A stretch of 64,000 bases of DNA from Bugula neritina (taxonomy: Eukaryota > Animalia > Bryozoa): assembly GCA_964035545.1 (NCBI GenBank), contig OZ037765.1:6706698-6770697 (forward strand), in the 5' to 3' direction. Positions 20,191 through 46,621 of the stretch are shown piece by piece. Position 1 is the first letter of the stretch. Each line of letters starts with the position of its first letter. Below the pieces are notes generated by a model. It had not been told where the DNA came from and searched no databases. It was given only the letters and a program-made list of their open reading frames with translations. The translations under genes and the position numbers were made by a program.

Positions 20191-23100
20191 ATGAGATCTG
20201 CACTGTGTTGGTTACCAATACTTCTTGCTATAGTGACGGTTATTTGCTTCAGTGTATCATATGTCTTTGCAGTTGTTAGAGGGGATATCAATGCATTCTG
20301 GCCCTATATCAGGTATAAACATGTGATTATAAAGTATATATAAGTATTAGTAGTAATATTGCAAGCTTACCAGTATAGAACTTACATTATATAAGTACAT
20401 ATTTCTCTCACAACTCAATTTAGCTGCTGCCTCTGTTGATACAACTTGCATTTTCTAAACAATACTTGGTCAACTTCATTAACTTTGTAAAACACTTGTA
20501 AAGTATTTTTCTTGGATGTGAACATTAACCTGTGACTGAAGAGTATTAAAAGTTGTGCTAATTGTAACACAGTTGTTGCAAAAATATGTTAGTTTGTGCA
20601 ACACTTAATAAAATCAGCCTAGCCGATATTGACAATGAAGTTTGTGAAACTCATTACACAGAAAACACCCAAACAGTTTTTTTTATATTTTTGAAGTTAG
20701 TAATGTAATGCAATTTTTATTCGCATTTAATGTAATGTTTTGATTTAAAGATATATAATTGACACTAAAGTTTATTTTCACATACGTTGGTTTGACAAAA
20801 TTTTGAAGACCAAAATTTACTTTAATTTCCCATATAATTGGGCAGGTGAAGAAGATTTTAAATTATATGTTTTAGTGATACTGGGGGCCAGGAACCTGAA
20901 AGTTGTTTATTTGGCCAATTGTTGAATTTTTCTGCATTTCTTGGTGAGTAAAGCTTATCTAAGCAAGTCATCCTCAAACTGATATCTATAATTTATCTCA
21001 ACAAATTTTATTTTTAAAATATTAAATCTAGAGTCTTGTAAATATTTCAGAATGAAGCTAGCAAAGGTATTTATAAGCACAATTTATAAACTTGTTTTCT
21101 AATAACATTTGCTTCACTGCTTAAACTTTCAACGCTATGAAGATAGAAACATTTTCCAGAAAGAATTTTTAGCACAGATTGTTAATCTATAATATATATG
21201 CAATCTTAATTCCAGGAAGACACAGGTGAATATTGCATCATATTTTACTTGTTTCTGTTATTTTCAGCTATGGCTACAATGTACGTTAGATTCAAGTTGG
21301 TTCAAGCATTTAACAATTATGACAGAAGCCTTAGGATATTGAATAAAGTGGCTCTGTTTATGGGTGCGCTGTCTAGTCTGGGCGTGTCTTTAGTAGCCAA
21401 CTTTCAGGTGAGCTGCCGTTAAAGATACAGGAAGTTAATAACTGCACATTTATTTAGTAGAACTATTATTAACATTTAATGAAGGATTTGCTACAACGGA
21501 TTCAACTTTGCTCAGTTATTCCAAGTGTAATGCCCAGCCATTTGTATGATATTCATATTCTACATTTTGGCTAATTTCAAAAAACGCTTAAAGATAAGGG
21601 AGTTTTCTTATAAATAGTTTGTTGAATGAATTAATAGTGTTAATGAAGACACAAATGTCAATCAGCCTAATGTATTACAGGACACTTACGTTGTAAGTGT
21701 ACATATGACTGGAGCATTTATGGCTTTTGGTATTGGAGTTGTCTACTGTTTCCTGCACACTGTTATCACGAGAAAAATGTATCCAATGTACAATAATAGG
21801 AGTATTTGGATTCTTAGATTTTTCATTTCTCTACTTGGACTCTTGTCTTTGATACTCAGTAAGTTAATTTTATACTTGAACAATTTCACTTTATAGTGGT
21901 AAGGTTTTGCAATTATTAATTTGTAGTAAAGAAGATCAAGTTGCAAATTATGTCACTGCTAAGATTGTAGCTTGCATTTAGATGTAGGCTCAAGTTTTCG
22001 TTATAAATAAACGCTATTTTTTTATTTGAGTTTTTCTTTTTAATCTTCCATATGAATAATTTTGTGTGTACAATATATAATTGAAGGCTTATGCAGTAAA
22101 ACTTGAAAACATGTTTAATATAAGCAATTTAGCAAAGTTTAAACCATTTAAATTTTAAATTACTTTTAAACAAAACACACGTAATTTAAACCAAAGTAGT
22201 CTACTCTGTAGCCTGAGAACTAAAGACCCTCTCAAGGTGATATTTTATGCAGCAACTACAGGTCAACAGGCTAGACCTATGAAAGTGATTATAACATCAT
22301 AAGCTAAATTTTTTTTCATTAGTATCACACTGAACTACTTCTTACAGTAAATCTTCAAATTAATTTGTTAAATCATAATTATTTATTATTGTTTTAATGA
22401 AATTACCAGCAATCAACTATATATTCACTGTTAGAGAGATTTAATATCACTTGATTATTGTGTTGTTATTTTTAACTTTATTTTTATTCACTGAGGGATA
22501 ATTTTATCAATTTCTATTAATTAAACCTAAAGCTGCAAAGAAGGTTTCTTTAATCTAATGCTCAATGCTTGTAGCTGCCCACCAATTTATATTTATCTGA
22601 ACTTTCAAATAAAAGTTGTATCTATTGACATGACCAAGTACTTTTGAGTCACTTAAAGTTGGCTTGAGTTGATTCAGTTCATTGGTTGACTTAATTTGAC
22701 TTAACTTTTTTGTCAAGACTATGATTCACCTTACCTTCACTTATTTAGTCCAAGACTTAGCTCGACTTGCTGTGCCTTTGACCAGGTTTTGTGACTGATA
22801 GATTTGTTCATATATAGAGGCATGTGTGTACTAATATTGTATGAGTAATATATTTTTAAAGCTTCACATATTTTCTTTACCATTAAATTTATTAACAAAT
22901 GCATAAAATATTTAAAATGTGGGCAGCTCATTGGATAATTTAAGCTAAATTGCTGGTTTGAATTACTCAAGTTTCACTGTATTATGGGTTTACTGTATAC
23001 AGTTTTGTAAATGTTTTTTTGCAGCGTTTGTATTTGCAAGTATTGCGAGTGCACAAGCTGGAAGTATTTCTCAAGTTACAGATTTCACTAAGAAATGGAA

Positions 23101-24042
23101 TGCAACAGAACCTGTAAGTTCTATTATATTTTTATAATTATTCCCTAAAAAAAGAAATTATTTCGTCAACTTCATATCTCTGCTAAGCAATTTGAGTAGT
23201 TTTAATTTAAGTAATTGTTATTCATTTTAAGATGCTCTTCACAGTAACAAGTATTGTTAATAATATAAAGAATATTATTTCCTAACAATTGGTATTTTCC
23301 ACTTCAATTTTTACATATTAGTGAACTGTTTTTAAAAAAGAGTTGGCATCTCACTGAAACTCCCAAGTAGTCATAGACCCAGTGAAACATTTTTAGTGAT
23401 AAACACAACTATGAAAAAAATTTTACAGACATTTTCTCTCTGCTATCTTGTTTTTTTATCTGAACTAATTTGGAATTACAAATTTTACAAATATTTTGTC
23501 CAAGTTGGAAGTAGAAATTCAAATGAAAATGAAATCAAATAATGTAGAATGGAATTGTGTTTTTTTATTTGTCCTCTTGACTGAATTTGTAAACAGTTCT
23601 AAATAGATTATACTGCATACAGCAGGAGTAGTTTATGTTACAATCCTACCCTACCAGATACCTATATGCGACTCTTATAGCTTCTCTTATTAATAAGTTT
23701 GATGAGATACCTGTAGACAAGATAGCATAATTTTATAAAGCAATATTTTACCCATCGACACTGCTATTGGTGAATTATTTTGAGTATTTTCCCATGGTAT
23801 CCTGTATCTATATATCATGTACATGTAGTACTTATATTATTCAGGGGTTTGACGAGCACATTGTCAGTACAATGAGTGAGTGGATGATAGGCGTAGCTTT
23901 CCTCTCTTTCTTCCTCACTTATGTCAAAGATTTCCAGAAGATTACAATAAGAATTTTACCAGAACTGCTGGTCTCACACTTGGATGAAACCCCCATAGTG
24001 TTCAACTCAGGGCCTACTGAACGAACTGGCCTACTGGCCTAA
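20191..24042 (+). CDS. DRAM-like protein (Frag1/DRAM/Sfk1 family) copy 1, 264 aa, canonical residues intact
   Basis: Exons 20191-20312, 20876-20943, 21268-21407, 21681-21858, 23025-23113, 23845-24042. Motifs: WPYISDTG, PESCLFGQLLN, YVRF, VANFQ, VHMTGAFMAFG, HIVSTMSEW, TYVKDF; six hydrophobic segments; C-terminal ERTGLL. Confidence 0.94.
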
Positions 24043-25132
24043 GCTCACTCTTTTATGCTCTTATATTTGTGACTTTAAAAGCAGGAAACCAACAGTATAG
24101 ACTTTCCTTTAACTTGTGATCTAATACTATCTTTCTTTTATTGTAGTTATGTGAATGTGTTTATATATTATTCACACAGTCTATTCATTGAAGCATGCTG
24201 GTGATGTTTTTCCTAGTACACCCTTTAAAATTTTGCTATAATTTGATACTTTAAACTTCATGTAAATACACTGTATCAGCTGTGGGCAATTAGAAAAACT
24301 AAGATATTAAGGTTTTTATTTTTGTATTTTTGTTATGCATATATAAGGATGATAAAAACTATTTGGCAGTCATGAATATCCATTATTTTGTTGAAGTTCA
24401 ATAGTGACAAATTCATTGCTATATGATAATTTATTTGAATTATGCTTAAATGCAGACCTATTTAGATGTTAATGTGATTCTTCAAAGTCACATTAATACT
24501 GGTTGAGGATTGGGGTAATTGTCTATGCATGTTTCTATTTCATTGCCTTTGTTAAATTGTGATTCACTTTAACTTATATCATCAGTGGAGACAAAAACCT
24601 ACCTGTAACTGTCTAAATAACATACATATATTGCAGTTAATAAAACTGGCATTGCCAGCACTTTTACTAATTATAAATAATATCATGCAGCTTACCTGTA
24701 GACCTTTGTACTTGTGAGAGAATATAATGTAAGAATATAATAAATAATATAATGTCCATGGATATCCCTGAATTAAGAAAGTTCAGATTTGATATCTTTT
24801 AGCTTTTACCTGCACAATTTTCTGTAAGTAATAGTGAGGTTGGAACTTAAAGAGCAAAATATACCCAATTATTGCCAAAGAGGTTTTGCTCTCAATTACA
24901 AGTTATATTGATTATAGGCTTGAGCAGATTTAAATTGTTTCCTTTTGATACTTAGCCTTAAATCTTGCAACTCCTTTGTGCATATAATATGTGGATCCCC
25001 TCAATTTGCATTTGTTACTGGTTTTGAAGACTGCAGGTTATGCAATAAACTAAAACTTCCTCCTAATTCGATGGGTCTTTGTGCAAGCATAATACAAGTA
25101 AATTGATCAGCTGTGTTTATGACTAATTCCCA

Positions 25133-25473
25133 GTCACATGAGCTAGGCCTTGTATCTGTATATTGGGGATAAAGATTACAGCAGTTCAGTAGCAGCAGTC
25201 AGAAGGGAAGTGCGCTCTCTAACTGAAGCAGATTTCTTGCATTCAACAGTTTTTCTTGCCATTTTGTAAAACATACATTCTAGATTTAATATTCATCTAC
25301 ATATAATATCAAACCATTGTTTCAAGTCTCGTTTTTTCTGTTGACACTCACATTGTGATTGAATCTAAGTTCTGGTGTTGTGATTTGTATTCACGGTGGA
25401 GATTGATATCATAGGCCAGCAGGCTGGATACGAAGTATAAACTGTGATAGGCTGATCCGTTTTGCTGGTAGGT
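25133..25473 (+). promoter_or_regulatory. Conserved promoter/leader-exon-like block upstream of DRAM copy 2 (repeated at 31903-32247, 41490-41851, 47749-48120)
   Basis: GTCACATGA (M-box/CLEAR-like) followed by a less AT-rich conserved ~300 bp block ending in donor CTG|GTAGGT, present in all four units. Confidence 0.45.
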
Positions 25474-25680
25474 TATCTTATCTGAACATTTCAAGTATGC
25501 ATCTTATTGTTACTTAATGTCTGTTTGTAAATTTTCCTGCTAGAATTTTAATTTATAGTTGAAGTTAAAGTTTTCATATTTATGTTTCGACAGCTGGGAA
25601 CAACAAAAGAAAACATACCACATTTGTTAACATTGGTCAGTTATACCAAATACAGCTACAATAAGTTTAATTACCTATTC

Positions 25681-25919
25681 CAGGGGTGGTCAACTAGGGG
25701 CCCCAGGGTCACCTGTGGCCCTAGCTTCGCCTATTTTTCAGTGGCCCTTTTGATGCTTAAGATAAGCAAACATGTTACATCTATTCTGATTAGCACAGTA
25801 CAAGTTTAGTAACAAATTACTTTATTATAATCAGATTTAATATGTGTAAAATCATGTGGCCCTTCATTTTGGCTGACCTCTGAACTTGGCCTTCATGCTG
25901 AAGAAGTTGCTCACTCCTG
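25681..25919. mobile_element. hAT-type MITE
   Basis: TIRs caggggtggtcaac / gttgctcactcctg; 8-bp TSD (a/g)cctattc; empty site near 48284 in unit 4. Confidence 0.85.
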
Positions 25920-26565
25920 GCCTATTCTATCTACTAATTTTCAGTAAACTTTAAATAAAATATTTAGGTTTGATCTCATATACAATAATTGGTATATTGT
26001 CATTTAAACTGAGCTTTTTTAAAGCTATTAAAATTACAAAACTAAAAATCAGCAACATGGTGGTTACATCCTAGAGCTGTAACCAAATTGAAAAACCTGA
26101 ATTATCACATGAGACTATTGCGTCTTTCTTTGCAAGTTCTATTTATATTAATTATATTAATAAACACACGATGTACCCAAACTTTTAACAAAGTTTACTC
26201 AGACTAACAACAGAAGTGAACTTACTAGAAGTTTTAATAATGTTACATTAGCAGAGAATAGCAGAGATGCATGATTACATAGTATTTTTTCGAGCTGCCC
26301 TAATATAGAAAACCTGTATTGTTCTATGCATCATATATGCAATTTTTGATACTGTGTTATTAATTATGCAAATCTGCTGCTGTGCTTTGTAGATTGTCTC
26401 TATTCAATTAACATTCACATACTGTTGAAATCTTTAACGTACGTTTTATAAAGTATAGCCAGTTAGGTTTTACCAGGATATGTACTGAGGTTGCACACCA
26501 CACAAACTACTTGTATAATACTGATATGGTTACAGGACGGAGAGGAAAATCACTCCTATGAGAAA

Positions 26566-26792
26566 ATGAGATCTGCACTGTGTTGGTTACCAATACTTCT
26601 TGCTATAGTGACAGCTATTAGCTTCTATGTAGGAGAAGACATCTATCCATTATGGCCCTATATCAGGTATAAACATGTGATTGTAAGCTATATAAAATGT
26701 ATGCGCATATATATATGAATATCTGTATGCAATATATGCAGTATATACGTGTGTGTGCGTTTGTATTATATATGTCTATATATATACAATAT

Positions 26793-26889
<97 letters not shown>

Positions 26890-26914
26890 CACACATATAT
26901 ATATGTATGTATAT

Positions 26915-26953
<39 letters not shown>

Positions 26954-29900
26954 TCACAGCTCATGTACTCATGTAATTTATATAATTCAGAAATAATTGA
27001 CGCTAGAATTTATCATTTTTATTTTATGTTGAAAAATACAACTCATTAAATTTTGAAGACCAAAGTTTAATTCAATTTCCTAAATAATTAGACAGATTTT
27101 GAATTATGTTTTGGCAGTACTGGTACTGTCCAAGAAGCTGTAACAGGTGTAATTGGTCAATTTTTGAATGTTTCTGCATTTCTTGGTGAGTGGAGTTTGT
27201 CTAAGCAAGTTGCTCTCAAACTGGTTTCTGCAATTTATCCTATGACAATTTTTTTAGTTTTCAACAAGTTTTTAGCGGACTTTCAAATAATATTTGCTTT
27301 ACTACGCAAAATATTTTATCATTGCACTTTATAAATATATATAGAGACATTTACCAGATCAAATTCTGATTATGAATTTTTAGTCTAAAGCAGATATGCA
27401 GACTGAATTCCGAATATGAATATTGCACCATATTTCACTTGTTTCTGTTATTTTCAGCTATGGCTACTATGTATGTTAGATTCAAGTTGGTTGAAGCGTT
27501 TAGTAATGACGACAGGAGCCTTAGGATATTGAATAAAGTGGCTCTGTTTATGGGTGCCCTGTCTAGTCTGGGCGTGTCTTTAGTAGCCAACTTTCAGGTG
27601 AGCTGCCGTTAAAGATACAGGAAGTTAATAACTGTACATTTATTTAGTATAACTCTCTGAGCTATAATTAGTAGCAATAAAAATTTTTTTTGAACAGATT
27701 TTATAAGATTTATCAGTTTTTCTCAGTTACTCCAAGTAGTATATATATATACATTTTTATTATACATTTTGGCTAACTTTGAAAACCCTTGAACATAAGG
27801 TGTGTTCTTGTCGAATATAAATTGCTTGGTGAATGAATTAATAGTTTTAATTTATGACTTTGGATAAAGACACAAATTGTCATTGGCCTAATATATTACA
27901 GAGCACTTCCGTTGTAAGTGTATCTATGACTGGTGAATTTATGGCTTTTGGTATTGGAGTTGTCTACTGTTTCCTGCACACTGTTATCACCAGAAAAATG
28001 TATCCAATGTACAATAATAGGAGAATTTGGCTCGTCAGACTTTTTATTTCTGTACTTGTGCTCTTGTCTTTCATACTCAGTAAGTTAATTTTATACTTGA
28101 ATATTTTCACTTTATAGTGATAAGGTTTTGCAACAATTAATTTGTAATAAAAAAGATTACAATGTACACTACTAAGTTGGAAATTATGTCACTGCTAAGA
28201 TTGTAATTTAAGCATTTTTCTAATTTATTTTAATTACTAATTTGATTTCAACAAAACACACCTTATTCAAACCAGAGGAATCAACTCTGTAGCCTGAGAA
28301 CTAAAGACCCTCTCAAGGGGATGTTTTATGCAGCAACTACAGGTCAACAGGCTAGACCTATAGAGAGTGATAATAATATCATAAGCTAATTTATTTTTAT
28401 TAGTTTCAGACTAAACTACTTCTTACAGTAAGTCTTCAAATTAATTTAATTTTATTAAATTATGAAATTATTTATTAGTGTTTATTTATTAAAATTCACT
28501 GTTGTTTGGGAGATTTAATATCACTTGATTATTGTGTTGTTATTTTTAACCTTTCTGTTTTTCACTGAGTTATAACTTTATTGATTAATATTGATAAAAA
28601 AATACTTTAATATAGTAGCTTTTAGAGTCTAGAGTCTAGACCTAAAGCTGCAATTTTAGTTTCTTTTGTTTAAGTTGCTCAATGTTTGTGTAGGGAAAAT
28701 TTTATGTATAATAACTTAGAATTGTCTTTTTGGTTTTTCTACTTTTAATATAATAATTTTGTGCAATCGTGTAAGCCGATCTCAGCCGAAAATCGAAAAA
28801 AAAGACGATGTCGGAAATGCCGATTGTGTTTAGAACGTCCTATCAGGTATGTTGGCAATTCCGACATCTCTCGGAACCCTTGATTTTTGGACTTGATCGG
28901 CAGAAGTTTCTAGAAGGGACTTTTTCCCCAATATATAAGGAGATGAGCTCACAGAGTAGATCAGTCTACCACTGGAGCTTGCAGGATACAGACACACACA
29001 CATACACCCTTATACCTTACAATAAAGATTACTTCACTCGGAACTATCAACCTACCTTGTTTCTTACATCTCGGAGTTATGCTCCCCACTGAATTGCATT
29101 CTACCCACAAAACTACTACACTTGTAGCACCAATTTATATTTATGTGAACTGTCAAACAAAAGTTATATCTATTGACGTGACCAAGTACTTTCGAGTCAC
29201 TTAAAGTTAGCTTGAGTTGATTCAGTTCATTGGTTGACTTAATTTGACTTAACTTTTTTGTCTAGACTATGATTCAACTTACCTTCACTTATTTTGTACT
29301 TGTGACTGATAGATTTGTTCATATATAGAGGCATGTGTGTACTAATATTAGACTATTATTAGGAATATGAATAAATTTTTAAAACAGCCAGGCGTTGGAG
29401 TTTTAAAGTTCTACATATTTTTTATCTAGTATTTAATTTATCAACCTATGCTTATTAATATTTAAAATATGGCATGTCACATATACCAAACTATGGTTAT
29501 TTTATAAGCTAAATTTCCTGGTTTGAATTATTCAAGTTTCACTGCATTCTGTGTAAACTGTATATAGCTTTGCAAATGAAGTTGATGTTTTGTTGCAGCT
29601 GCTGTATTTGTAATTATTGCGAGTGCACAAACTGGAAGTATTACTCAAAATATTGGTTCCAAGAATTGGAATGCAACAGGACTTGTGAGTTCTATTATTT
29701 TATAATTATTCGCTATATTATAAAGAAAAATAATTTTACCAATTTGATATCTCTGCTAAACAATTTCAGTAATTTTAGTTTAAATATTTATTAATCTTTT
29801 TTTTTAAATGGCGCTATTCATAGTAGTTACAAGTATCACTAGTATAAGGAAAATGAATTCTTAATAACAATTCGTATTGTCCTATTCCATTATTGTGTAT

Positions 29901-31210
29901 TGGTGAACTGCTGTTAAATAAAGAGTTGTCATCTCACTGAAACTCCTAAGTAGTCACAGCCCCAGTGAAACATTTTTAGTGATAAACACAGCTATGAAAA
30001 TTTTTAACAGACATTTCCTTTCTGCTGGCTTGTTTTCCTATCTGAGTTGGATCGGGATTATTTACTAAATATTTTAAAAGAATTTTGTCCAAGTTGAAAG
30101 TAAAAATTCAAATGGAAAATTGAGTGAAATAATATACAAAGGAGTTGTGTTATCTTTTAATTGCCTGCATGACTGAAATTGTAAACAGTTGTAATTAAAC
30201 TATACTTCATACAGCAGGAGTAGTTTGTGTAACAATCCTACTCTACCAGATACCTGTGTGCAACTCTTATCACTTCTCTTACTAATGGAAGAAATATGCA
30301 TATAATTACTTCCCCTTCCATGTAATGTCAATTTGGCTGTAAAATATGATGTAATAATGTCGTACTATATACCCTGAAAACCCAAGTAAAATGTTGTAAA
30401 TTCTAAATGTGTAAATTCTAAATGTGTAAATTCTAAATGTGTAAATGTAAATTCTATAATGTGCAATTATTAACTATAATGTAATTGTAGATTTATATTT
30501 TTCACAGACATAGCTTTGTGCTGTATTTATTTATTTTAAAGTAAAACATTCCCTAACCATTTTAAACTGCCTGGCTGAATAGTCTCCTTTATAACCAACA
30601 TTTCTCACCATGTTATATGTTGACTGCAACTCTTCTCTTTATACTCTAGACTTTATATACGCTAGAGTCTAGAACTAATACTTTCTGTATGTAAACTGTA
30701 ATACTGACACTTTATAAAATATGAGTTCTGGCAAATAAATGGTATATGATTTATTACAATCTTACATCAATAAATTTATACCTGTGTATAGGTGTATATA
30801 TAACTGCGTGAGTAAACTTGCGTGAGTATATATATATACATGAAAAGTATGGTGAGCAGTAAGTTTGGTGGGATATCTGTAGACAGGATAACATTATTTT
30901 ATAAACCTTTATTATACTCATAAACACTGCTATTGGTGAATTATTTCAAGTATTTACCCATGATATCTGATATTTATATGCCATGTACATGTATAGCACT
31001 TATATTATTCAGGGGTTTGACGAGCACATTGTGAGCATATCGAGTGATATGGTGTTGCATATAGCTTTCCTCTCTTTTTTCCTCACTTATGTCAAAGATT
31101 TCCAGAGAATGACAATAAAAATTTTACCAGAACTGCTGGTCTCACACTTGGATGAAACCCCCATAGTGTTCAACTCAGGGCCTACTGAGCAAACTGGCCT
31201 ACTGGCCTAA
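26566..31210 (+). CDS. DRAM-like copy 2, 256 aa, divergent luminal face
   Basis: Exons 26566-26666, 27118-27185, 27458-27597, 27902-28079, 29599-29684, 31013-31210 in frame, no stops. SDTG>STGT, VH>VS, EW>DM; tail EQTGLL. Confidence 0.85.
26800..26950. repeat. (TA)n microsatellite
   Basis: Long TA tract in the first coding intron of copy 2; source of the YIYIYI ORFs. Confidence 0.95.
28689..29120 (+). mobile_element. Solo LTR (432 bp, 4-bp TSD, Ty3/gypsy-like)
   Basis: TGTAG...CTACA termini; flanks tttg/cttg (cttg/cttg in the copy-4 relic); TATA-like tatataa ~28932 and AATAAA at 29021; empty site ctcaatgcttgtagct at ~22561 in copy 1. Confidence 0.85.
30395..30460 (+). repeat. 15-bp tandem repeat (tgtaaattctaaatg), 3-4 copies
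   Basis: Direct repeats in the last intron of copy 2; single copy at the equivalent site in copy 3. Confidence 0.8.
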
Positions 31211-33342: not shown

Positions 33343-34232
33343 ATGAGATCTGCACTGTGTTGGTTACCAATACTTCTTGCTATAGTGACAGCTATTAGCT
33401 TCCTTATGTCATATGTCTTTGGTCAAGGGGAAATGTTTTCATTTTGGCCCTCTATCAGGTATGAACATAGTATCCCCCTGTTCACACATTGCCGCATCGT
33501 AAACCGTAACAGCACAAAAAAAATGGCGCTGCTGTTACATTTTGTCAACGGGCGTTCACACATTGACGTAAAAGTACAACGCATGATGTTGAGTTGTGAC
33601 CAATCATAATGAGGTTAATTCTTGCCTGCGGTGATTTGAATGCTTTTGAATTTTATTTACAAATCATTCGCAACATTCTTTTCAAAAGATGTTATATAAA
33701 TGCTGTTTACTAAATAAAAGCAAGTACATGAAAAGAATCTCTCTTTTAAATATATTCGTTTTTAAAATAATTGTACAAACTAATTTAAATAATGAATATT
33801 GAAGTCGCCCAAATCAGTTTTAAGTTTTAGGTTTGCGTGCTTTTGTGATTAGGGAAAGCTAGATTTTTAAGCTGAGTTTAATTCAAACAAGCCAGATAAA
33901 GATTTTTTAATTCTTTAAAGCTTTTGAATTAGTTAAATTGAATCAACAATAAGTGATCAAAATAAACTAGCGAAAATGTTCTTTAACTTTTAGTACTAGA
34001 TCGACTCTAGCCAATGGGAGCCCGCCGTGATTTTTCGAATCAAGCACTGCTTGATCAACGCCGCAGCAGCGTATACCGGGCTACGATTCAGGCCGGATGT
34101 TATCAAAGATGGCGGATATTTGCTGTTGCGGCGTACGGTGCGGCAATGTGTGAACAGGGGGTTAGATTGTAAAGTATATAGTGTGTGCTTGTATATAAAT
34201 CTATAAATACATACATTTATATATGTCCATAT

Positions 34233-34286
<54 letters not shown>

Positions 34287-36176
34287 AATATATAAAGGAT
34301 AAATAAGGCCATAACTCCAAAACTAGCTTTGAATATTTGGACAAATACTTCCGAGGTAATTAAATGGTTCACAAATTTAGATAACAACAAATGCTTATCT
34401 TTTATTGTATTTGACATTGTCGACTTTTATCCATCAATAGCTAATAAATTACTCCACACTGCAATTGATTTCGCAGCAGAGCATACCACCATAACAGACA
34501 CAGACCGCACCGTGATTTTCCATGCCAGAAAAATGTTGTTATACCATTCCGGCCAACCCTGGAGTAAAAAATGTGGCTCATTATTTGACATTACAATGGG
34601 CAGCTATGACGGTGCAGAATGTTGCACTCTGGTCGGCATATTTTTACTATATAAAATCAACCAGAAGTTTGGAAATACCTTCGGTCTATACCGTGATGAC
34701 GGTCTAGGAGTAATCAACGACACTGCAAAAAATATAGATAGAATTAAAAAATCAATCTGCAAAATTTTCCAAAAACATAATCTAAATATCACCATTGAAG
34801 TAAACAAAAAAGTCGTCAACTATCTAGATATAAATTTTGACATTAGCAAAAGAACACACAAACCCCATGTAAAACCTAACAGCGAAATCCTATATGTAAA
34901 CTCCAAATCCAACCATCCACCCCATATCACAAGAAACATTCCACATGCCATAAACAACAGGGGCTCTCCAATCTCTCATTTAACGAAGAAGTCTTCAGTC
35001 AAACAACAAAAATACACCAAGAAGCTCTAAGTAAAAGTGGATACACACATAACCTAACATTCCAGCCAACACACACCACTAGCAGACCAAAAAGAGAAAG
35101 ACGACGAAACATCACATGGTATAACCCCCCATTCTCCAAAAGTGTAACAAGCAACCTGGGAAAACAATTTTTTAAAATCCTGGAGGAAGAAATACCCAAA
35201 GATCACAAACTCTACAAAATTTTCAACAAAAACAACATAAAACTCAGTTACAGCTGCTGCAGAAATTTAAACAACATAATCAACAGCCACAATAAAAGAT
35301 TACTCAACCCAGCAAACCAACCTCCTCGAGAATGTAACTGCAGAAACAGCACAGTGTGCCCACTAGATGGAAAATGTCTCACAATTAGTGCATCATATAC
35401 CAAGCTACAGTTACAACCAAAGATGGCAGCCAACCCCAGACTTACGTGGGAACATCAGAAACAGAATTCAAAGCCAGATTGTATAACCACAAATCAACTT
35501 TTAACAACAAAACAAAAAAGAACCATACTGAATTGAGCAAATATATCTGGAAACTAAAAGACAAGAACACCCATTTTGACATAACATGGAAAATTATGAA
35601 AAAGACCAACTCATACAACAAAGTCACTAAAAGGTGCAACCTCTGCCTATGGGAAAAATATTTCATAATATACCAGCCCAGCAAATCTTCCCTTAATAAC
35701 AGAAATGAGATTCTATCCACATGCAGACATGCGCGTAAGCACTACCTGGGCAACATCACATAACAATACTAACAATTCTCAACCATAGTACTACCTATTA
35801 TAAATTACCCTTTCCATCAAACATCTAGCTTTTATAGTCTAATCCTTTAGAAAAAGAGCAATTTAATTAATTAATAGATAACACCAAATCCACTACTATG
35901 TTTGCATTTCGTTTTACGTTGTGTTTAGCATGATAGTTTTCTTTATGTAAAAATTTGAATAATCGGTATGCTTCATAGATTTTATTTATTTTTAGTCTAA
36001 CACCTGACGAGTGCAGTTTACTGTACGAAACTATATAGTCGTGTGAGATTTTTTAAATAAAAAAATATATATGTATCATTAACAATCTGAACACACTACA
36101 TTATATTAGCTCTGTCACCCGTGATATCGAGCACTTTACTTCGTTGGAACTCCAACTAGATTGACAATCAGCATAC

Positions 36177-36257
<81 letters not shown>

Positions 36258-39200
36258 GATGGTAAAAGGTATTGTTATATCCTTTTGAACAATACAATTC
36301 ATTAAATTTTGATGACCAACGTTTAATGCAATTTCCTATATTATTGGGCAGATTTTAAATTATGTTTTAGTGATACTGCTGGTCAAGAAACTGAAAGATG
36401 TTTATTTGGTCAATTCTTAAATTTTTCAGCTTTTCTTGGTGAGTAGAGTTTGTCTAAGCAAGTCATCCTCATTTCAACTGATTTCTGTAATTTATCATGA
36501 CAGCTTTTTAGTCCATACAATATTTTAGCAAGTTTCTATAGCTGATTTTCAAGTAACATTTCCTTCACTGTGTAAAATATTTAAATGTTACGCTCCATAA
36601 ATATATAAATATTTTCCAGAAAGGACTTTTAGCACAGATTGTTAATATCTAAAAAAAATGCAGATTTAATTACGAATTGCATCATGAACAATGCATCATA
36701 CTTCACTTGTTTCTGTTATTTCCAGCTATGGCTACAATGTATGTTAGATTCAAGTTGGTTGAAGCATTTAATAATTATGACAGAAGCCTTAGGATATTGA
36801 ATAAAGTGGCTCTGCTTATGGGTGCTTTGTCTAGTCTGGGCCTATCTTTAGTAGCCAACTTTCAGGTGAGCTGCCGTCTCACTTACAGATCGATGTGCTT
36901 CACTTCTTACAAGCAAATAGGAAGTTTACAACTGTAAATTTATTTCTTAGAACTATCTGAGCATTTAATGAAAGATTTACTACAACACATTTCATAAAAC
37001 TATAAGCATTGCTCAGTTATTCCAAATAATAATGCATTCATATTTTACAATTTGGCTACTTTTAGAAGCTCTTTAAGATAAAAGGTAGTCTTGTAAATAA
37101 ATTGTTTGGTGAATGAATTAATATTTTTAATGTATGACTTTGAATAAAGACACAAATGGCAATGCTACTAATATATTACAGGACATCTACGTTGTAAGTG
37201 TATCTATGACTGGAGCATTTATGGCTTTTGGTATTGGAGTTGTCTACTGTTTCCTACACACTGCTATCACCAGAAAAATGTATCCAATGTACAATGGTAG
37301 GAGTATTTGGCTCCTCAGACTCTTTATTTCTGTACTTGGACTCTTGTCTTTGATACTCAGTAAGTTTATTTTTTACTTTATTCAAATCATTTCCTTATCA
37401 GGTGGTGGGCTTTTGCTTAACTCCCAAGTAAACCAAACTTTTCCATTTCACCCGATCACTTGTGATTCTGATTTAGATCTAGCCAGCGGAGGTCAGCTTT
37501 GATTGTCACTCTACTGTTGTTTCGATTGATTACGCCCTCTGCTTCCAGCTCATTTCATATACTCTCCTTATATTATCATCTCTCTCACATCGCCAAACAT
37601 AGCCATACCATTCCAGCCCCTTTTTTCTCAAGACATCTTTGATTGGCATAATATTGATGTTGCAAAAATTAATTTGTAGAAAAGAACATCAAGTTGCAAA
37701 TTAAATCACTGCTAAGGTTGTAGTTTACAGTTAGATGTAGGCTAACTTTTTTGTCATAAAAAAAACTTGTCGTTTCATTGGAGCTTTTATTTTCAATCTT
37801 CCATTTGCATAATTCTACATGTACAATATATATACATACATACAGTGTATACATATACAGTGCATACAGTGTTATAAATGAGGTTGATGTTTTGTTACAG
37901 TTGTTTTATTTGCAATTATTGCGAGTGTACAGGCCGGAAGTGTTGCTAAAGGTCTTGATTTCCCTAGAAGATTGAATGAGACAGGACCTGTAAGTTTTAT
38001 TATTATTATTTTATCATTATTTTGCTATTTTATGTTAATTTTATATCTCTCCTAAGCAATTTTAGTATTTTAATTTAAATAATCATTAATTATATCTAAG
38101 GTGCTTTTCACAGTAACAAGTAATATCAATATTATAAAAGAATTGATTCCTAATTTTTATAACAATTCATATTTTCCACTTCAATTATTACATATTAATA
38201 GCTAAGCAATTTGAGTAGTTTTAATTTGAGTAATTATTATTCCTTTTAAGATGCTTTTCACAGTAACAAGTATTGTTAATAATATAAAGAATATTAATTC
38301 TTAACAATTGTTTCCACTTTCATTATTATATATTAGTGAACTGCTGTTAAATAAAGAGTTGTCATCTCACTGAAACTCCCAAGTAGTCACAGACCCAGTG
38401 AAACATTTTTAGTGATAAACACATCTATGAAAATTTTTATCAGACATTTTCTCTCTGCTATCTTGTTTTTCTATCTGAGTTGGATCGGGATTATTTACTG
38501 AATATTTTACAAATATTTTGTCCAAGTTGAAAGGAGAAATTCAAATGAAAAATGAAATCAAATACCATATAATGGAGTTTCGTTTTCTTTCATTTGTCTG
38601 CTTGACTGAAATTGCAAACAGCTATAAATAGACTATTCTGCATACAGCAGGATGTAATTGCTTCCCTTTCCATGTAATGTCAATATGGCTGTTAAATATA
38701 TCCTAAAAACCCAAGCAAAATATTGTCAATGCTAAATGATATAATATATAGTATGCATTTCCGAGTTATATGTTATTTATACTTTTCACAGACATAGTTT
38801 TGTGCTGTATTTATTTATTTTAAAGTAAAACATTCACTAACCATTTTGAACTGCCTGGCTGAATAGTCTCCTTTATAACCAACATTTCTCACCATGTTAT
38901 ATGTTGACTGCAACTCCTCTCTTTATACTCTAGACTTTATACGCTAGAGTCTAGAACTATTACTTTCTGTATGTAAACTGTAATAAAAACTCACGCAAGT
39001 TTATAGTCACTATCCCTGTGAGAAACCCCTGATGGAAAGGGTTTTTGCTAGAACGGGCTAAGGACTTGTTTAAATGAGGCACAGGAGCAATTATGACTGG
39101 ATGCTCTTCCTAACATCACCAATGGCCTTTGTCGGGGTTCGAACCCACAACTTCGTGTTCACAAAGCGAACGCTTTAGCCCCTAGACCACGGCTGCTCCT

Positions 39201-40243
39201 GTATGTAAACTGTAATACTGACACTTTATAAAATATGAGTTCTGGCAAATAAATGGTATATGATTTATTGCAATCTTACATCAATGAATAGCTGGAAAGT
39301 TTGGTGAGCAGTGAGTTTGCTGAGATGTCTGTGACAGCCGATACTGCTTCCTGTGTCAGCTGATAATTGTTACTGAGTCAGCACGGATGCCTATGTATTG
39401 TGATTCATTTAATGAAGGGTTAATGGATAGAGGACACAGATGCAGGCCACAACTTTGATTTTTGTCTATTGCCAACAGTATATTTTCTAAGTTAGACTAA
39501 ACTTGAGCTCACATTCAGACTTAGACTCATATTCATACTTGAACTCAAACTCGAACTTGAACTCATACTCGAACTGATACTCATACTGTAACCTATAACC
39601 ATGAAAATTACAAACATATTGTTAACTTAACACTAATTACATAGCTGACAAAACATTTATTTAATGAAGTTCAAAACAAACGACAATATAATACTTGATA
39701 CTTACAATTATTTTGACAATTGAGTATAGATTGCCTGCATCCTTAGCAGGAGGAAAATTGAGCTACACTGACTCTTGAATAAAAATAGCTAGCAAATAGC
39801 TATAGCGAAAGCTTTCACAAATAGCTTTCGCTACACATTGGTTTTTGGAAAGCTGCCAAAAAACTCCTGCAACAATGTCTGTACAGGGGGAGGGGAGGTG
39901 GGGATAATGTTATTTTATAAAGCAATATTTTACCCATCAACAATGTTGTTGGTGAATTATTTTGAGTATTTTCTCATGGTGTCTGATATCTATATATGCC
40001 ATGTACATGTATATGCCGTGGCCATATAGTGCTTATATTATTCAGGAGCTTGGGGAACAAACAGTCAGTGGATTGAGTGAATGGATGATAGTCTTAGTTT
40101 TTCTCTCTTTCTTCCTCACTTATGTCAAGGATTTCCAGAGAATGACAATAAAGATTTTACCAGAACTGCTGGTCTCACACTTGGATGAAACCCCCATAGT
40201 GTTCAACTCAGGGCCTACTGAACGTACTGGCCTACTGGCCTAA
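33343..40243 (+). CDS. DRAM-like copy 3, 262 aa
   Basis: Exons 33343-33458, 36371-36438, 36726-36865, 37182-37359, 37901-37989, 40046-40243 in frame. PYISDTG>PSISDTA, PES>TER, VH>VS, EH>EQ; SEW and ERTGLL kept. Confidence 0.87.
33474..34161. mobile_element. Non-autonomous TIR element (MITE), PIF/Harbinger-like termini
   Basis: ~41-bp TIRs ccccctgttcacacattgccgca.../...tgcggcaatgtgtgaacaggggg with 4 mismatches; absent from copies 1, 2 and 4; TSD ambiguous. Confidence 0.85.
34283..36177 (+). mobile_element. 5'-truncated Penelope-like retroelement (RT plus C-terminal GIY-YIG endonuclease, pLTR), frameshifted
   Basis: RT motifs FDIVDFYPSI, MGSYDGAE, GLYRDDGL, YLDI, SNHPP; linker WYNPPFS, KLSYSC, CNC...CPLDGKCL; endonuclease IIY...YVG...FKARLYNH...CNLCLWEK...LNNRNE...CRH. 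Frameshifts at ~34961 and ~35388; stop 35763; both ends lie in (TA)n. Confidence 0.93.
36000..36044 (+). ncRNA. Type I hammerhead ribozyme in the Penelope pLTR
   Basis: acac-CUGACGA-gugcag(uuua)cuguac-GAAA-cuauauag-UC-gugu: complete core, 6-bp stem II, palindromic stem III, GUC cleavage triplet, 4-bp stem I. Confidence 0.88.
36178..36251. repeat. (TA)n microsatellite flanking the Penelope element (partner tract 34235-34282)
   Basis: Direct observation. Confidence 0.95.
37385..37645 (-). mobile_element. 3' fragment of an RTE-like LINE
   Basis: Insertion absent from other copies. Minus-strand translation LRKKGLEWYGYVWR...IRRVYEM, IKADLRWLDL, DRVKWKSLV resembles the RTE ORF C-terminus (RLxWxGHV...DRxxWR). 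Confidence 0.7.
38986..39199 (-). mobile_element. Full-length tRNA-derived SINE with 18-bp TSD
   Basis: A box tggtctagggg, B box ggttcgaaccc; perfect TSD tgtatgtaaactgtaata (38968-38985, 39200-39217); single-copy empty site at ~30686 in copy 2. Confidence 0.93.
39330..39874. mobile_element. Solo LTR (545 bp, 5-bp TSD)
   Basis: TGTGACAG...CTGCAACA termini; TSD atgtc at 39325-39329 and 39875-39879; internal (gaactc)n-like repeats; absent in other copies. Confidence 0.75.
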
Positions 40244-42010
40244 GCTCACTCACTCTTTTATGCTCTTATATTTGTGACTTTAAAAGCAAGAAACCAACAG
40301 TATAGACTTTCCTTCAACTTGTGATCTAATACTATTTTTCTTTTATTGTAGTTATGTGAATGTGTTTATATATATTTGCACACAGTCTATTCATTGAAGT
40401 ATGCTGGTGATGTTTTTTCTAGCACACCATTTAAAATTTTGCTATAATTTGATATTTTAAACTCCATGTAAATACACTGTATCAGCTGTGGGCAATTAGA
40501 AAAACTAAGATATTAAGGTTTTTATTTTTGTATTTTCGTTATGCATATATGTATAAGGATGATAAAAACTATTTGGCAGTTATGAATATCCATTGTTTTG
40601 TTGAAGTTCAATAATGACGAATTCATTACAATGATAATATATTTGAATATTTAGATGTCATTATGCTTCTTCAAAGTCACATTAACACTTGATGAGTATT
40701 GGGGTAATTATAATTGTCTATGTTTCTATTTCATCGCCTTTGTTATATTGTGATTCACTTTAATTTACTGTACATCATCAGTGGGGACAAAGAACCACCT
40801 CTAACTGTCTAAAATCTAAATCATACATGTATACATACTGCAGTTATTAATACTGGCACTGTGGGCTCTTTTACCACCCATATAAATAATATCAAGCCTC
40901 TTTAAAGACCTTTGTACTTTTGTGCGTTATAATAAATAATATAATGTCCTTGAGCATTACTGAATTAAGAAAGTTCTGATTTAGATATCTTCATAATTTT
41001 CTGTAAGGTTGGGAACAAGAAAAGCAAATGAGCAAAATATACCCAATCATTGCCAAACCATGCACTCTGAAGGTTTTGCTCTCTTTAATGGTTTCAAATA
41101 ATGTAAAGTTGAATCCGTTGTTCGAGAATACAGCAACTATCTGAGTTTTATTTTATAATAATTATGTATAGTTTGTCATGAGGTTAGATAGCAAATTACA
41201 AGTTATATTGATTATACGCTTGAGCGGATTGGAATTGTTTCCTTCTGATACTTAGCCTTGAATCTTGAAACACTTTTGCGCATATAATCACTGAGCTGGA
41301 AAAGTTATTATTATTGAGTTCATTGCATGTAATATGTAGATCCCCTTCATTTGCATTTGTTATTGGTTTTGAAGACTGCAGGGTCTTATGCTGGTAATGC
41401 AATAAACTATAACTTCCCTATAGTTCAATGGTTCTTTGTGCATGCATAATACTAGTAAATTGATCAGCTGTGTTTATGACTAATTCGCAGTCACATGAGC
41501 TAGGAATTGTATCTGTATATTGGGGATAAAGATTACAGCAGTTCAGTAGCAGCAGTCAGAAGGGAAGTGCGCTCTCTAACTGAAGCAGATTTCTTGAATT
41601 CAAGATTGCTAGTATTTTTCTTGCTATTCTGTAAAACATACATTCTAGATTTAATATTCATCTACATAATTATTATAATATCAAACCATTGTTTCAAGTC
41701 TTGTTTTTCTATTGACGCTCACATTGTGATTGAATCTAAGCCATTTGTTCTGGTGTTGTGATTTGTATTCACGGTGGAGATAGATATTGTATGCCAGCAG
41801 GCTGGATACGAAGTATAACCTGTGATAGGCTGATCCGTTTTGCTGGTAGGTTATCTTATCTAATCATTTCAAGTAGGCATGCATGTTACTGTTACTGAAG
41901 TTAAGGTTTTCATATTTATATTTCTGAGGATAACAAAAGAAAACATACCACATTTGTTAACATTGGTCAGTTATACCAAATATAGCTACCATAAATTTAT
42001 TTGCCTACTC

Positions 42011-42255
42011 TAGGCGTGAGCAACTGGGGGCCCCAGGGTCACCTGTAGAGTGTGACCCTAGCTTTGACTATTTTTCAGTGGCCCTTTTGATGCTTAAGAT
42101 AAGCAAACATGTTATATCTATTCTGATTAGCACAGTGCAAGTTCAGTAACAAATTACTTTAATATCATAAAATTTGATATGTGTAAAATCATGTGGCCTT
42201 AGTTTTGGCTGACCTCTGAACTTGGCCCTCATACTAAAGAAGTTGCTCACTCCTG
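42011..42255. mobile_element. hAT-type MITE (duplicated with the unit)
   Basis: TIRs taggcgtgagcaac / gttgctcactcctg; TSD gcctactc/gcctattc. Confidence 0.85.
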
Positions 42256-42925
42256 GCCTATTCTATCTACTAATTTTCAGCAAACTTTAAATAAAATATT
42301 TAGGTTTGATCTCATATACAATAATTAGTATATTGTCATTTAAACTGAGCTTTTTTAAAGCTATTGAAATTACAAAACTAAAAATTTATCAGCAACATGG
42401 CGGTTACATCCTAAAGCTGTAACCAAATCGAAAAACCTGAATTATCACATGAGACTATTGTGTCCTTCTTGGCAAGATTTGTTTGCCATTCACTTTTATA
42501 CAAGTTCTATTTATACTAGTTATATTAATAAACACATGATGTACTCAAACTTTTTTGCAAAGTTTACTCAGACTAACAACAGAAGTGAACTTTCTAAAAT
42601 TAAGTAATGTTACATTAGCAGAGAATAGCAGAGATGCATACATAATATGGTATTTTTTCTTCGTGCTGCCATAAAGAAGAAAAACTATATTGTTCTGCAT
42701 CATATATGCAATCTTTAATACTGTTATTATTTATGCAGATCTACTGCGTTGTTTTTTCAATTGTCTCTATTTAATTCACACTCATATGCTGTTGAAATAT
42801 TTATTTTATGTTTTATAAATTAGCCAATTAGGCTTTACCAGGATATGTGCTGAGGTTGCACACCACACAAACTACTTGTATAATACTGGTTACAGGACCG
42901 AGAGAAAAACCACCCCTATGAGAAA

Positions 42926-44296
42926 ATGAGATCTGCACTGTGTTGGTTACCAATACTATTTATTATAGTGACAGCTATTTGCTTCTATGTAGGAGAAGAC
43001 ATCTATCCATTCTGGCCCTATATCAGGTATAAACATGTGAGTGTAAGCTATATAAAATGTATGCGTATATATATAAATATCTGTATGCAATATATGCAGT
43101 ATATATGTTTGTGTGCGTTTGTATTATATATGTCTATATATATATACAATATATGCAATATATGCAATATATACAATATATACAATATATACAATATATA
43201 CAATATATATATATATATTATTGAAGAAAAGAGCAATTTATTTAGATGTTTTATTGCGCTACTAATAGTTTCATGCCTCTTCGGCATTCCTCAGATTGTG
43301 CCTGAGGAGTGCCGAAGAGGCATGAAACTATTAGTAGTGCAATAAAACATCTAATTAAATTGCTCTTTTCTTCAATAATATAATTGCTCATTATTATACA
43401 CATAATAATTTGAGCACTTTTTCATCTGCTGCTTTTTAAAAAACTCACGCTACGACTATTATATATATATTTATATATATTTATTCACAACTCATGTACT
43501 CATGTAATTTATATAATTCAGAAAATAATTGATGCTAGAATTTATTATTTTTATTTTATGCTGAAAAATACAACTCATTAAATGTTGAAGACCAAAGTTT
43601 AGTTTAATTTCCTATATAATTGGACAGATTTTGAATTATGTTTTAGCGGTACTAGTGTCCAAAAAGCTGTAAGATGTGTAATTGGTCAATTCTTGAATGT
43701 TTCTGCATTTCTTGGTGAGTGAAGTTTGTCTAAGCAAGTCATGCTAGCTCAAACTGATTTTTGCAATTTATCCTATGGCATTTTTTTTAGTTTTCAGCAA
43801 GTTTCTTGCTGACTTTCGAATAACATTTGCTTTACTACACAAAATATTTGATCATTGCACTTTATAAATATATATAGAGACATTTACCAAATCAAACTTT
43901 TCTTTGAATTTTCAATCTATAATAACAGATATGCAGACTGAATTCCGGATATGAATATTGAATGATATTTCTCTTGTTTCTGTTATTTCCAGCTATGGCT
44001 ACTATGTATGTTAGATTCAAGTTGGTTCAAGCATTTAACAATTATGACAGAAACCTTAGAATATTGAATAAAGTGGCTCTGTTGATGGGTGCACTGTCTA
44101 GTCTGGGCATATCTTTAGTAGCCAACTTTCAGGTGAGCTTCCATTAAAGATACACTCATGTTAGCAAACAGAAAGCTAATAACTGTACATTTATTTAGTA
44201 TATAATTCTCTGAGCTATAACTAGTGGCAATAAAGAATTTTTTGGAACAGATTTCATAAGATTGATCAGTTTAGCTCAGTTATTCCAAGTAGTATA

Positions 44297-44391
<95 letters not shown>

Positions 44392-46621
44392 TTAATATTA
44401 TACATTTTGGCTAACTTTGAAAACCCTTGAACATTAGGAGTGTTCTTGTAGAATATAAATTGCTTGGTGAATGAATTAATAGTTTTAATTTATGACTTTG
44501 GATAAAGACACAAATTGTCATCGGCCTAATATATTACAGAGCACTCCGCTTGTAAGTGTATCTATGACTGGTGAATTTATGGCTTTTGGTATTGGAGTTG
44601 TCTACTGTTTCCTGCACACTGCTATCACCAGAAAAATGTATCCAATGTACAATAATAGGAGTATTTGGCTCGTCAGACTTTTTATTTCTGTACTTGTGCT
44701 CTTGTCTTTTATACTCAGTAAGTTTATTTTATACTTGAACAGTTTCACGTTATGGTGGTAAGGTTTTGCAACAATTAATTTGTAGTAAAAAAGGTTACAA
44801 TGTACACTACTAAGTTGCAAATTATGTCACTGCTAAGATTGTAGTTTAAGCGGTTTTCTAATTTATTTTAATTACTAATTTGATTCCAACAACACACACC
44901 TAGTTCAAACCAGAGTAATCCACTCTGTAGCCTGAGAACTAAAGACCTTTTCAAGGTCAACAGACTAGACCTATAGAGAGTAATAAAAACATCATAAGCT
45001 AATTTCTTTTTATTTGTCATATTAAGCTACTTATCACAGTAAGTCTTCAAATTAATTTAATTTTATTGAGTCATATAATTATTTATTAGTGTTTATTTAT
45101 TAAAATTCCAGCAATCAACTATATATTCACTGTTAGTGAGATTTAATATCACTTGATTATTGTGTTGTTATTTTTAACCTTATTGTTTTTCACCGAATTA
45201 TAATTTCATTGATTAATATTGATAAAAATAATACTTTAATATAGTAGCTTCTAGAGTATAGACCTAAAGCTGCAATTTTAGTTTCTTTTGTTTGAGTTGC
45301 TCAATGCTTGTGTAGTGAAATTTTTATGTATCTCGGAGTTATGCTCCCCACTTAATTGCATTCTACCCACAAAACTACTACACTTGTAGCGGTCCACCAA
45401 TTTATATTGATGTGAACTTTCAAATAAAAGTTATATTTATTGGCATGACCAAGTACTTTCAAGTCACTTAAAGTTGGCTTGAGTTGATTCAGTTCATTGG
45501 TTGACTTAATTTGACTTAACTTTTTGTCTGGACTATGATTCAACTTACCTTCACTTATTTTGTACTTGTGACTGATAGATTTGTTCATATATAGAGACAT
45601 GTGTGTACTAATATTAGACTATTATTAGGAATATGAATAAATTTTTAAAACAGCCAGGTGTTGAGTTTTAAAGTTCTACATATTTTTTTATCTAGTACTG
45701 AATTTATAATCAACCTACGTTTAAAAATATTTAAAATATGGCATGTCACATTATATGCCAAACTATGGTTATTTTATAAGCTAAATTTCCTGGTTTGAAT
45801 TATTCAAGTTTCACTGCATTCTGTGTAAACTGTATACAGCTTTGCAAATGAAGTTAATGTTTTATTGCAGCTGCTGTATTTGCAATTATTGCGACTGCAC
45901 AAGCCGGAAATATTGCTCAAAATATTGATTCCAAGAATTGGAATGCAACAGGACTTGTGAGTTTTATTATTTTGTAATTATTTACTATAAAGAAAAATAA
46001 TTTTACCAACTTCATATCTCTGCTAAACAATTTTAGTAGTTTCAGTTTTAATGGTTATTAAATATTTTTTTAAATAGCTCTTTTCATAGTATTTACAAGT
46101 ATTACTAGTATAAGGAAAACTAATTTTCAATAACAAGTCGTATTTTCCACTGCAATTATTACGTATTAGTGAGCTGTTTGTAAATAAAGAGTTGTCATCT
46201 CACTGAAACTCCTAAGTAGTCATAGACCCAGTGAAACATTTTTAGTGATAAACACAGCTATGAAAATATGGTGAGCAGTAAATTTGGTGGAATATCTGTA
46301 GACAGGATAACGTTATTTTATAAACCTTTATTATACTCATAAACACTGCTATTGGTAAATTATTTTAAGTATTTACCCATGATATCTGATATCTATATGC
46401 CATGTAGCACTTATATTATTCAGGGGCCTGGTGAGCAGTCTGTGAGCTTATTGAGTGAGTCTGTGTTATATATAGCTTTCCTCTCTTTCTTCCTCACTTA
46501 TGTCAAGGATTTCCAGAGAATGACAATAAGAATTTTACCAGAACTGCTGGTCTCACACTTGGATGAAACCCCCATAGTGTTCAACTCAGGGCCTACTGAA
46601 CGAACTGGCCTACTGGCCTAA
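42926..46621 (+). CDS. DRAM-like copy 4, 256 aa, divergent luminal face
   Basis: Exons 42926-43026, 43647-43714, 43993-44132, 44540-44717, 45871-45956, 46424-46621 in frame. SDTG>SGTS, PES>AVR, VH>VS, GA>GE, EH>EQ, EW>ES; tail ERTGLL. Confidence 0.86.
43214..43456. mobile_element. Penelope-type pLTR fragment with inverted 5' duplication (81-bp-arm palindrome)
   Basis: 43214-43294 is the reverse complement of 43302-43382 (3 mismatches, 7-nt spacer). Inserted in a TA tract; absent at the same site in copy 2; shares gagcacttt with the pLTR at ~36130. Confidence 0.8.
43295..43343 (+). ncRNA. Type I hammerhead ribozyme
   Basis: auugugc-CUGAGGA-gugcc(gaaga)ggcau-GAAA-cuauuag-UA-gugcaau: 7-bp stem I, 5-bp stem II, short stem III, GUA triplet. 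A second copy lacking the stem I 5' arm lies on the minus strand (43253-43294). Confidence 0.82.
44298..44388. repeat. (TA)n microsatellite
   Basis: Direct observation; short in copy 2, expanded here. Confidence 0.95.
45311..45382 (+). mobile_element. Internally deleted relic of the 28689-29120 solo LTR
   Basis: Same termini (tgtagtgaaattttt ... ccacaaaactactaca) and perfect cttg TSD at the same intron position. Confidence 0.85.

Follow-up and report, generated by a model that had tools for sequence, protein, structure and literature searches.

A tandem array of DRAM2-type genes in Bugula neritina that differ mainly in their predicted luminal parts

DRAM2 (TMEM77) is a member of the Frag1/DRAM/Sfk1 family of six-helix endolysosomal membrane proteins. 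DRAM proteins are usually encoded by a single gene and act as slow-evolving modulators of autophagy and the lysosome. The DNA analysed here (the window) is a stretch of 64,000 nucleotides (nt) of the bryozoan Bugula neritina (assembly GCA_964035545.1, contig OZ037765.1, positions 6,706,698 to 6,770,697 of the forward strand). At positions 20191-46621 it carries four tandem copies of a DRAM2-type gene, and it raises the question of why these copies diverge in the parts of the protein predicted to face the lumen and stay almost the same in those predicted to face the cytosol. A first-pass annotation of the sequence had proposed diversifying selection on a recognition surface. The explanation that we favour, and to which we would give an even chance, is that one copy is the conserved ancestral DRAM2 gene and that the three others are derived copies in which luminal constraint was lost and trafficking and cytosolic functions were kept.

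Protein regions were assigned from the six hydrophobic segments, the positive-inside pattern and an AlphaFold model of a relative, P0120 (47% identical). The six segments of the array proteins align to P0120 without large gaps, and its model consists of six long helices and a disordered tail (predicted local distance difference test 88, predicted template modelling score 0.83), which fits the six-helix topology assumed at first reading. The N- and C-termini are predicted to be cytosolic and loops 1, 3 and 5 luminal, given the K/R excess in loops 2, 4 and the tail, a conserved N-x-S/T sequon in loop 5 and published work on DRAM1, whose C-terminus faces the cytosol and is required for lysosomal localisation (PMC11441506). 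On this assignment, 47 of 65 alignment columns (72%) vary among copies 1-4 in the luminal loops, compared to 10 of 78 (13%) in the cytosolic parts, loops and tail together (Fisher p = 2.5e-13). The helices are divided in the same way, with 30 of 64 variable columns (47%) in their luminal halves and 9 of 64 (14%) in their cytosolic halves (Fisher p = 9e-5). The variable segments thus lie on the predicted luminal side, as the first-pass annotation had it. Its codon counts for copy 1 against copy 4 hold, with minor differences: in exon 2, 11 of 22 codons are indeed replaced, with 2 silent-only changes instead of about 3; in exon 3, the 3 replaced and 4 silent codons were confirmed, out of a total of 47 and not 46.

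This profile is the reverse of that found in the family. In a set of 19 diverse DRAM-like proteins, conservation peaks in luminal loop 1 (mean identity 0.52) and is lowest in the tail (0.14), whereas among copies 1-4 identity is 0.49 in loop 1 and 0.98 in the tail. The nearly invariant loop-1 residues (P, S, G, P, C and F of PYISDTG..PESC.F) are all kept in copy 1 and in a fifth, more distant copy further downstream, and most of them in copy 3. In copies 2 and 4, SDTG has lost its D and PESC.F its P, E and F; in copy 2 the C is missing too. The array shares with DRAM2 and DRAM1 (PF10277) the six helices, the PYISDTG...PESC motif in copies 1 and 5, the NFQ motif ending helix 3 and the ExxxL[LI] end of the tail. 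It differs from them in having four recent tandem paralogues instead of a single gene, and in its variable luminal loops and invariant cytosolic loops and tail.

The four units were delimited by self-comparison, and exon models were built from reading frames and splice sites (Table 1). Copies 1-4 have six exons each, GT-AG introns, AG/GT exon borders and frames open to the stop; all 20 of 20 splice borders and all frames are intact, in agreement with the first-pass annotation. Copy 1, conserved and ancestral-like, retains the family luminal motif. Copy 2 is a derived member with a shifted exon 2 acceptor, and copy 4 a derived member nearest to copy 2; copy 5 is older, a canonical DRAM paralogue whose tail differs and ends in ExxxLI. 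Relative to copy 1, late exon 1 is shorter by 7 codons in copies 2 and 4 and by 2 codons in copy 3, and exon 5 is shorter by 1 codon in copies 2 and 4; all coding indels among copies 1-4 are multiples of three. In-frame length changes had been described in late exon 1 and exon 5, where they hold, and also in early exon 4, where part of the sequence that may have been read as exon is intron: the true acceptor of copy 1 is ...TTACAG/GAC at 21681. The upstream exon 4 start implied earlier was rejected, being out of frame with exon 3.

Table 1. Genes and other features of the DRAM array (positions in the window)
Feature	Position	Strand	Description
Copy 1, 264 amino acids (aa)	20191..24042	+	exons 20191-20312, 20876-20943, 21268-21407, 21681-21858, 23025-23113, 23845-24042
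Copy 2, 256 aa	26566..31210	+	exons 26566-26666, 27118-27185, 27458-27597, 27902-28079, 29599-29684, 31013-31210
Copy 3, 262 aa	33343..40243	+	exons 33343-33458, 36371-36438, 36726-36865, 37182-37359, 37901-37989, 40046-40243
Copy 4, 256 aa	42926..46621	+	exons 42926-43026, 43647-43714, 43993-44132, 44540-44717, 45871-45956, 46424-46621
Copy 5, 258 aa	50234..55265	+	exons 50234-50352, 50839-50906, 51615-51754, 53328-53505, 54031-54122, 55086-55265
Conserved 3′ block of copy 1	23943..24237	+	last 100 nt coding (tail) and ~195 nt past the stop
Retroelement fragment, intron 1 of copy 3	34329..35763	+	reverse transcriptase-like open reading frame with YRDDG

Membership of the DRAM family, recognised at first reading, was confirmed by Pfam. 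Pfam and database searches were run exon by exon; the joined proteins were used in local alignment, in the codon analysis and in one local tblastn against fetched loci. PF10277 (Frag1/DRAM/Sfk1) matches the exon 3 open reading frame with 30.5 bits (cut-off 30.3), exon 4 with 19.1 and exon 6 with 18.6, and a profile scan of the genome gave 51.1 bits with neighbouring exons combined. The nearest named proteins are the 'DRAM2' entries of B. neritina, and identity to full-length DRAM2-like proteins is 40-47%. In the 216,009,554-base assembly (the published B. neritina genome has 216.00 Mb; PMC11480708), copies 1-5 were the only ones found with the PF10277 profile, the exon 3 protein and the exon 6 DNA. 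Four intronless full-length PF10277 matches occur outside the window, on small contigs (C108:12976-13602, C72:11677-12306, C250:11449-12084 and C313:13296-13673). Those on C108, C72 and C250 have 4-5 in-frame stops, all TAA/TAG, and that on C313 a single TGA. In the first three, TAA/TAG looks to be read as an amino acid, as in a ciliate-like code, and these would be contaminant or associated-protist contigs.

Relatives of the array were found in another B. neritina assembly and in metagenomes. The GenBank contig VXIV02001920.1 (assembly GCA_010799875.2; L001 below) aligns to the window flank and to copy 5 at 88-92% and therefore represents a sibling lineage, ~10-12% diverged at neutral sites. 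It starts inside the array, 134 nt upstream of a single recent copy. This gene, KAF6028734.1 'DRAM2' (P0002), is chimeric: its exon 1 resembles that of copy 1, and the rest of it copies 2 and 4. Together with its neighbour KAF6028735.1 (P0010), it resembles the window array in its position beside the copy-5 orthologue, its family and its tail; it differs in being a single chimeric recent copy on a contig that begins within the array, and in its frameshifted exon 6 (L001:4957-5153), where three one-base indels relative to the window copies break the frame. The deposited protein ends in the out-of-frame stretch, and the downstream tail DNA is still identical. Either an assembly error or a null allele would account for the frameshift. 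Among metagenome contigs, L002 carries the orthologue of copy 1 exons 3-6, L003 a copy-2-like fragment and L008-L011 copy-1-type genes of more distant species. Metagenomes associated with B. neritina supply two intact copy-4-like exon-6 variants (L006:868-1062 and L007:197-394). Over the first 17 residues, 5-7 positions distinguish each of them from copy 4 and the two from one another, including a one-codon insertion; the sibling lineage therefore also has several derived copies. A metagenome scan with P0002 returned one unrelated locus only, at 41% identity.

Substitution rates were then compared between regions and between copies, all estimates being based on five to seven short sequences. 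Pairwise rates were obtained by the Nei-Gojobori method and likelihoods with a purpose-written codon program, whose M0 result (log-likelihood, lnL, -2251.960; tree length 1.071) was reproduced exactly by iqtree2. The pairwise ratio of nonsynonymous to synonymous rates (dN/dS) is 0.65-1.86 in luminal parts, ~0.3 in cytosolic parts and 0.3-1.3 in the membrane. Three pairs can be compared across the same species split. Copy 5 and its L001 orthologue have an overall dN/dS of 0.12 (luminal 0.04, luminal dN 0.007), and copy 1 and L002 of 0.14 (luminal 0.24, luminal dN 0.021). For copy 4 and the GenBank gene the overall value is 0.88 (luminal 0.83, luminal dN 0.17) and may mix paralogues, orthology inside the copy 2/copy 4/GenBank group being uncertain. 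A branch-by-partition likelihood model gave a luminal dN/dS of 0.19 on copy 1 branches (below 1, p = 0.019), 1.26 in the copy 2/4 clade (against 1, p = 0.44) and 0.86 on deep branches. Copy 1 is thus not hypervariable: its luminal parts are conserved relative to its sibling-lineage orthologue and to a distant species, where a copy-1-type exon 6 keeps its luminal start and tail motifs even though synonymous sites are saturated.

The copies are also mosaic. Intron by intron, copies 2 and 4 are separated by distances of 0.06 to 0.28, values that come from well-aligned introns only; pooled global alignments were set aside because of unalignable stretches (p ~0.45-0.49). Informative sites back conflicting groupings of the copies, and seven exon partitions yield five different best trees. 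There has clearly been gene conversion or recombination between copies, and separate trees per exon are needed because of this mosaicism.

With separate trees, much of the signal for diversifying selection is lost. In this rival explanation, the luminal loops would form a recognition surface, and the proteins an endolysosomal receptor or decoy family for pathogens, toxins, symbionts or non-self. Site models on a single tree do reject neutrality (M1a/M2a, twice the log-likelihood difference, 2dlnL, 17.7, p = 1.4e-4; M7/M8 18.2; M8a/M8 17.6) and place 12% of sites in a class with dN/dS ~4. Several pairs have a luminal dN/dS above 1 (1.86 for copies 2-4, 1.25 for copies 1-2, 1.16 for copies 3-2), and the luminal start of four copy-4-like exon-6 variants has a proportion of nonsynonymous differences (pN) of 0.15-0.21 against a proportion of synonymous differences (pS) of 0.05-0.15. 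Within the variable segments, conserved anchor residues and the N-x-S/T sequon are retained, and every coding indel is in frame. However, with trees and rates fitted per partition, the M1a/M2a test gives only 2dlnL 5.85 (p = 0.054). Class-averaged luminal dN/dS is ~1, and in no pairwise or branch-by-partition estimate is it significantly above 1. The synonymous rate is 2.2-fold higher in luminal segments, which models with one synonymous rate can misread as selection. Moreover, among the sites with most support are positions in helix 3 and cytosolic loop 2 besides luminal ones, copy 1 is strongly conserved and the repertoire is small, with four copies. The diversifying selection proposed at first is therefore not shown, and as an account of the array we consider it rather unlikely. 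Its narrower form, in which the derived copies 2, 3 and 4 and the sibling-lineage variants would make up a small, fast-turnover family of DRAM-based luminal sensors or decoys (for a pathogen, toxin or symbiont), with the luminal face under diversifying selection and the cytosolic module fixed, also appears unlikely. B. neritina carries a vertically transmitted bacterial symbiont.

The C-terminal tail, near-identical in all four copies, brings in a second rival explanation. Here the contrast would come mainly from patchy gene conversion homogenising exons 3-4 and the 3′ end, and the invariant cytosolic face would be concerted evolution more than protein constraint. In copies 1-4 the tail ends in a common 21-residue stretch followed by (R/Q)TGLLA, the single R/Q position being the only difference, as was seen at first. 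The tail carries a 12-residue segment and a terminal ExxxLL, the latter fitting the acidic-dileucine pattern. ExxxLL-type endings are also found in the relatives P0120, P0121 and P0014, and the C-terminal ExxxLL/ExxxLI would be a sorting-type motif for endosomal/lysosomal routing. The tail lies inside a 3′ block that continues into the 3′ untranslated region (UTR) and is 93-100% identical across copies 1-4 and the GenBank gene, compared to ~75% in introns (sliding identity and alignment). In copies 2-4 the corresponding blocks begin near 31111, 40144 and 46522; in copy 2 the 3′ similarity stops abruptly near +395 from the exon 6 start. Since the tail sits within this block, its near-identity among paralogues is partly a DNA-level effect, which could reflect a constrained 3′ UTR or gene conversion. 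An Rfam scan of 19000-57000 matched no family, and folding of the tail and 3′ UTR block gave no unusual RNA structure (z-score -0.59).

Conversion is further suggested by synonymous divergence, which is only 0.04-0.19 in the parts coding for cytosolic segments and rises to 0.1-0.5 in luminal ones, by the discordant exon trees and by the four-fold spread of intron distances within one pair. On the other hand, the few variable sites of the 3′ block mostly track the gene tree without grouping by species, and copy 1 differs from the others by ~25% in the introns on either side of exon 3, which would require conversion tracts to match the exon closely. The copy 1/L002 orthologues show equally low cytosolic change, for which conversion need not be invoked. 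Copy-1-type genes of distant species conserve the cytosolic parts and keep a 13-residue segment of the tail and TERTGLLA although synonymous sites are saturated (pS ~0.8), which shows selection on the tail at the protein level. The same saturation led us to reject a deeply conserved nucleotide-level element as the reason for tail identity. The tail can thus still be read as a protein signal, as the first-pass annotation had read it, with the reservation that among the paralogues it is embedded in near-identical DNA. Conversion alone explains some of the contrast and not the deep protein-level conservation; as the main cause it is quite improbable.

A third possibility is that copies 2-4, as duplicates, are unexpressed or dying, their luminal variation being early neutral decay. 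A luminal dN/dS of ~1, the loss of family-invariant residues in copies 2 and 4, the broken exon 6 of the GenBank relative and a protein collection without any full-length transcript-derived protein of copies 2-4 would all agree with it. The share of sampled words was 79% in one sequencing run of 2023 and 6% in two 'symbiont metagenome' RNA-Seq runs of 2016, the latter figure not being readable as expression. Plain pseudogenes are argued against because the frames are intact, the splice sites canonical, the indels multiples of three and cytosolic dN/dS ~0.3. In addition, the cytosolic helix halves come close to the cytosolic loops in conservation, in contrast to the luminal halves, and the two metagenome copy-4-type exon-6 variants are intact, so that the GenBank frameshift may be the assembly error or null allele mentioned above. 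The first-pass annotation had likewise set neutral decay aside, and we find this explanation very improbable.

We therefore return to loss of luminal constraint in derived copies. In this explanation, a DRAM2-type gene would have undergone a lineage-specific tandem expansion in Bugula neritina. Copy 1 would be the conserved ancestral gene, carrying the hallmark luminal motif and under strong purifying selection throughout, and copies 3, 2 and 4 would be derived duplicates whose luminal loops and luminal helix ends were freed from ancestral constraint. The freed parts would drift, or partly be driven, at roughly the neutral rate and acquire in-frame indels, and copies 2 and 4 have lost family-invariant residues; positive selection on a minority of sites is possible. 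The cytosolic loops, cytosolic helix halves and C-terminal tail would stay almost unchanged. Because these parts hardly differ, we infer that all copies most likely enter the same adaptor-dependent endosome/lysosome route and meet the same cytosolic partners, to which the luminal changes would add different luminal surfaces. Turnover of the array by duplication, unequal crossing-over and patchy gene conversion would add to the contrast between conserved and diverged parts.

Several points weigh against this explanation. Change of the loops at a neutral rate fits relaxed constraint without new function equally well. Site models prefer a class with dN/dS 2.8-4.1 at ~13% of sites, for which relaxation alone may be too weak. 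The orientation in the membrane depends on the positive-inside pattern, the N-x-S/T sequon and the DRAM1 literature, and the high ratio between copy 4 and the GenBank gene is subject to the uncertain orthology noted above.

The array can also be compared to birth-and-death arrays of the major histocompatibility complex (MHC) type with patchy conversion. Both are tandem and mosaic, vary in non-cytosolic parts on a conserved membrane and cytosolic scaffold, and have likeness in synonymous divergence, which in the DRAM array is higher in the variable segments. In contrast to MHC-like arrays, a dN/dS above 1 is not robust in the DRAM array, which has four members only, includes a highly conserved copy 1 and is known from sequence alone. 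The locus nevertheless amounts to a natural experiment, in which the cytosolic/trafficking module is fixed and the luminal side, normally the most conserved, is freed in three of four copies. Provided that these copies are expressed, comparing them with copy 1 could reveal the role of the conserved luminal motif, and also whether lysosomal multi-pass proteins can be turned into variable sensors of the lumen. Without expression, the locus is a young duplication cluster of an ordinary kind.

Other features lie in the introns. Intron 1 of copy 3 is enlarged by the retroelement fragment of Table 1, which has no role in gene function. Its nearest Atlas clusters carry RVT_1 and HTH_animal; a Pfam scan of its reverse transcriptase-like open reading frame gave no match. 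Both GC and AT skew flip within 34001-36000. Long TA-rich microsatellite tracts directly follow exon 1 on its 3′ side in copy 2 (26700-27000) and copy 4 (~43050-43150). In copy 5, intron 3 contains a tandem repeat (51792-52223) with a 144-aa Ser/Thr/Val-rich open reading frame in one frame and a Leu/Val-rich one in another, which is probably a minisatellite rather than a gene.

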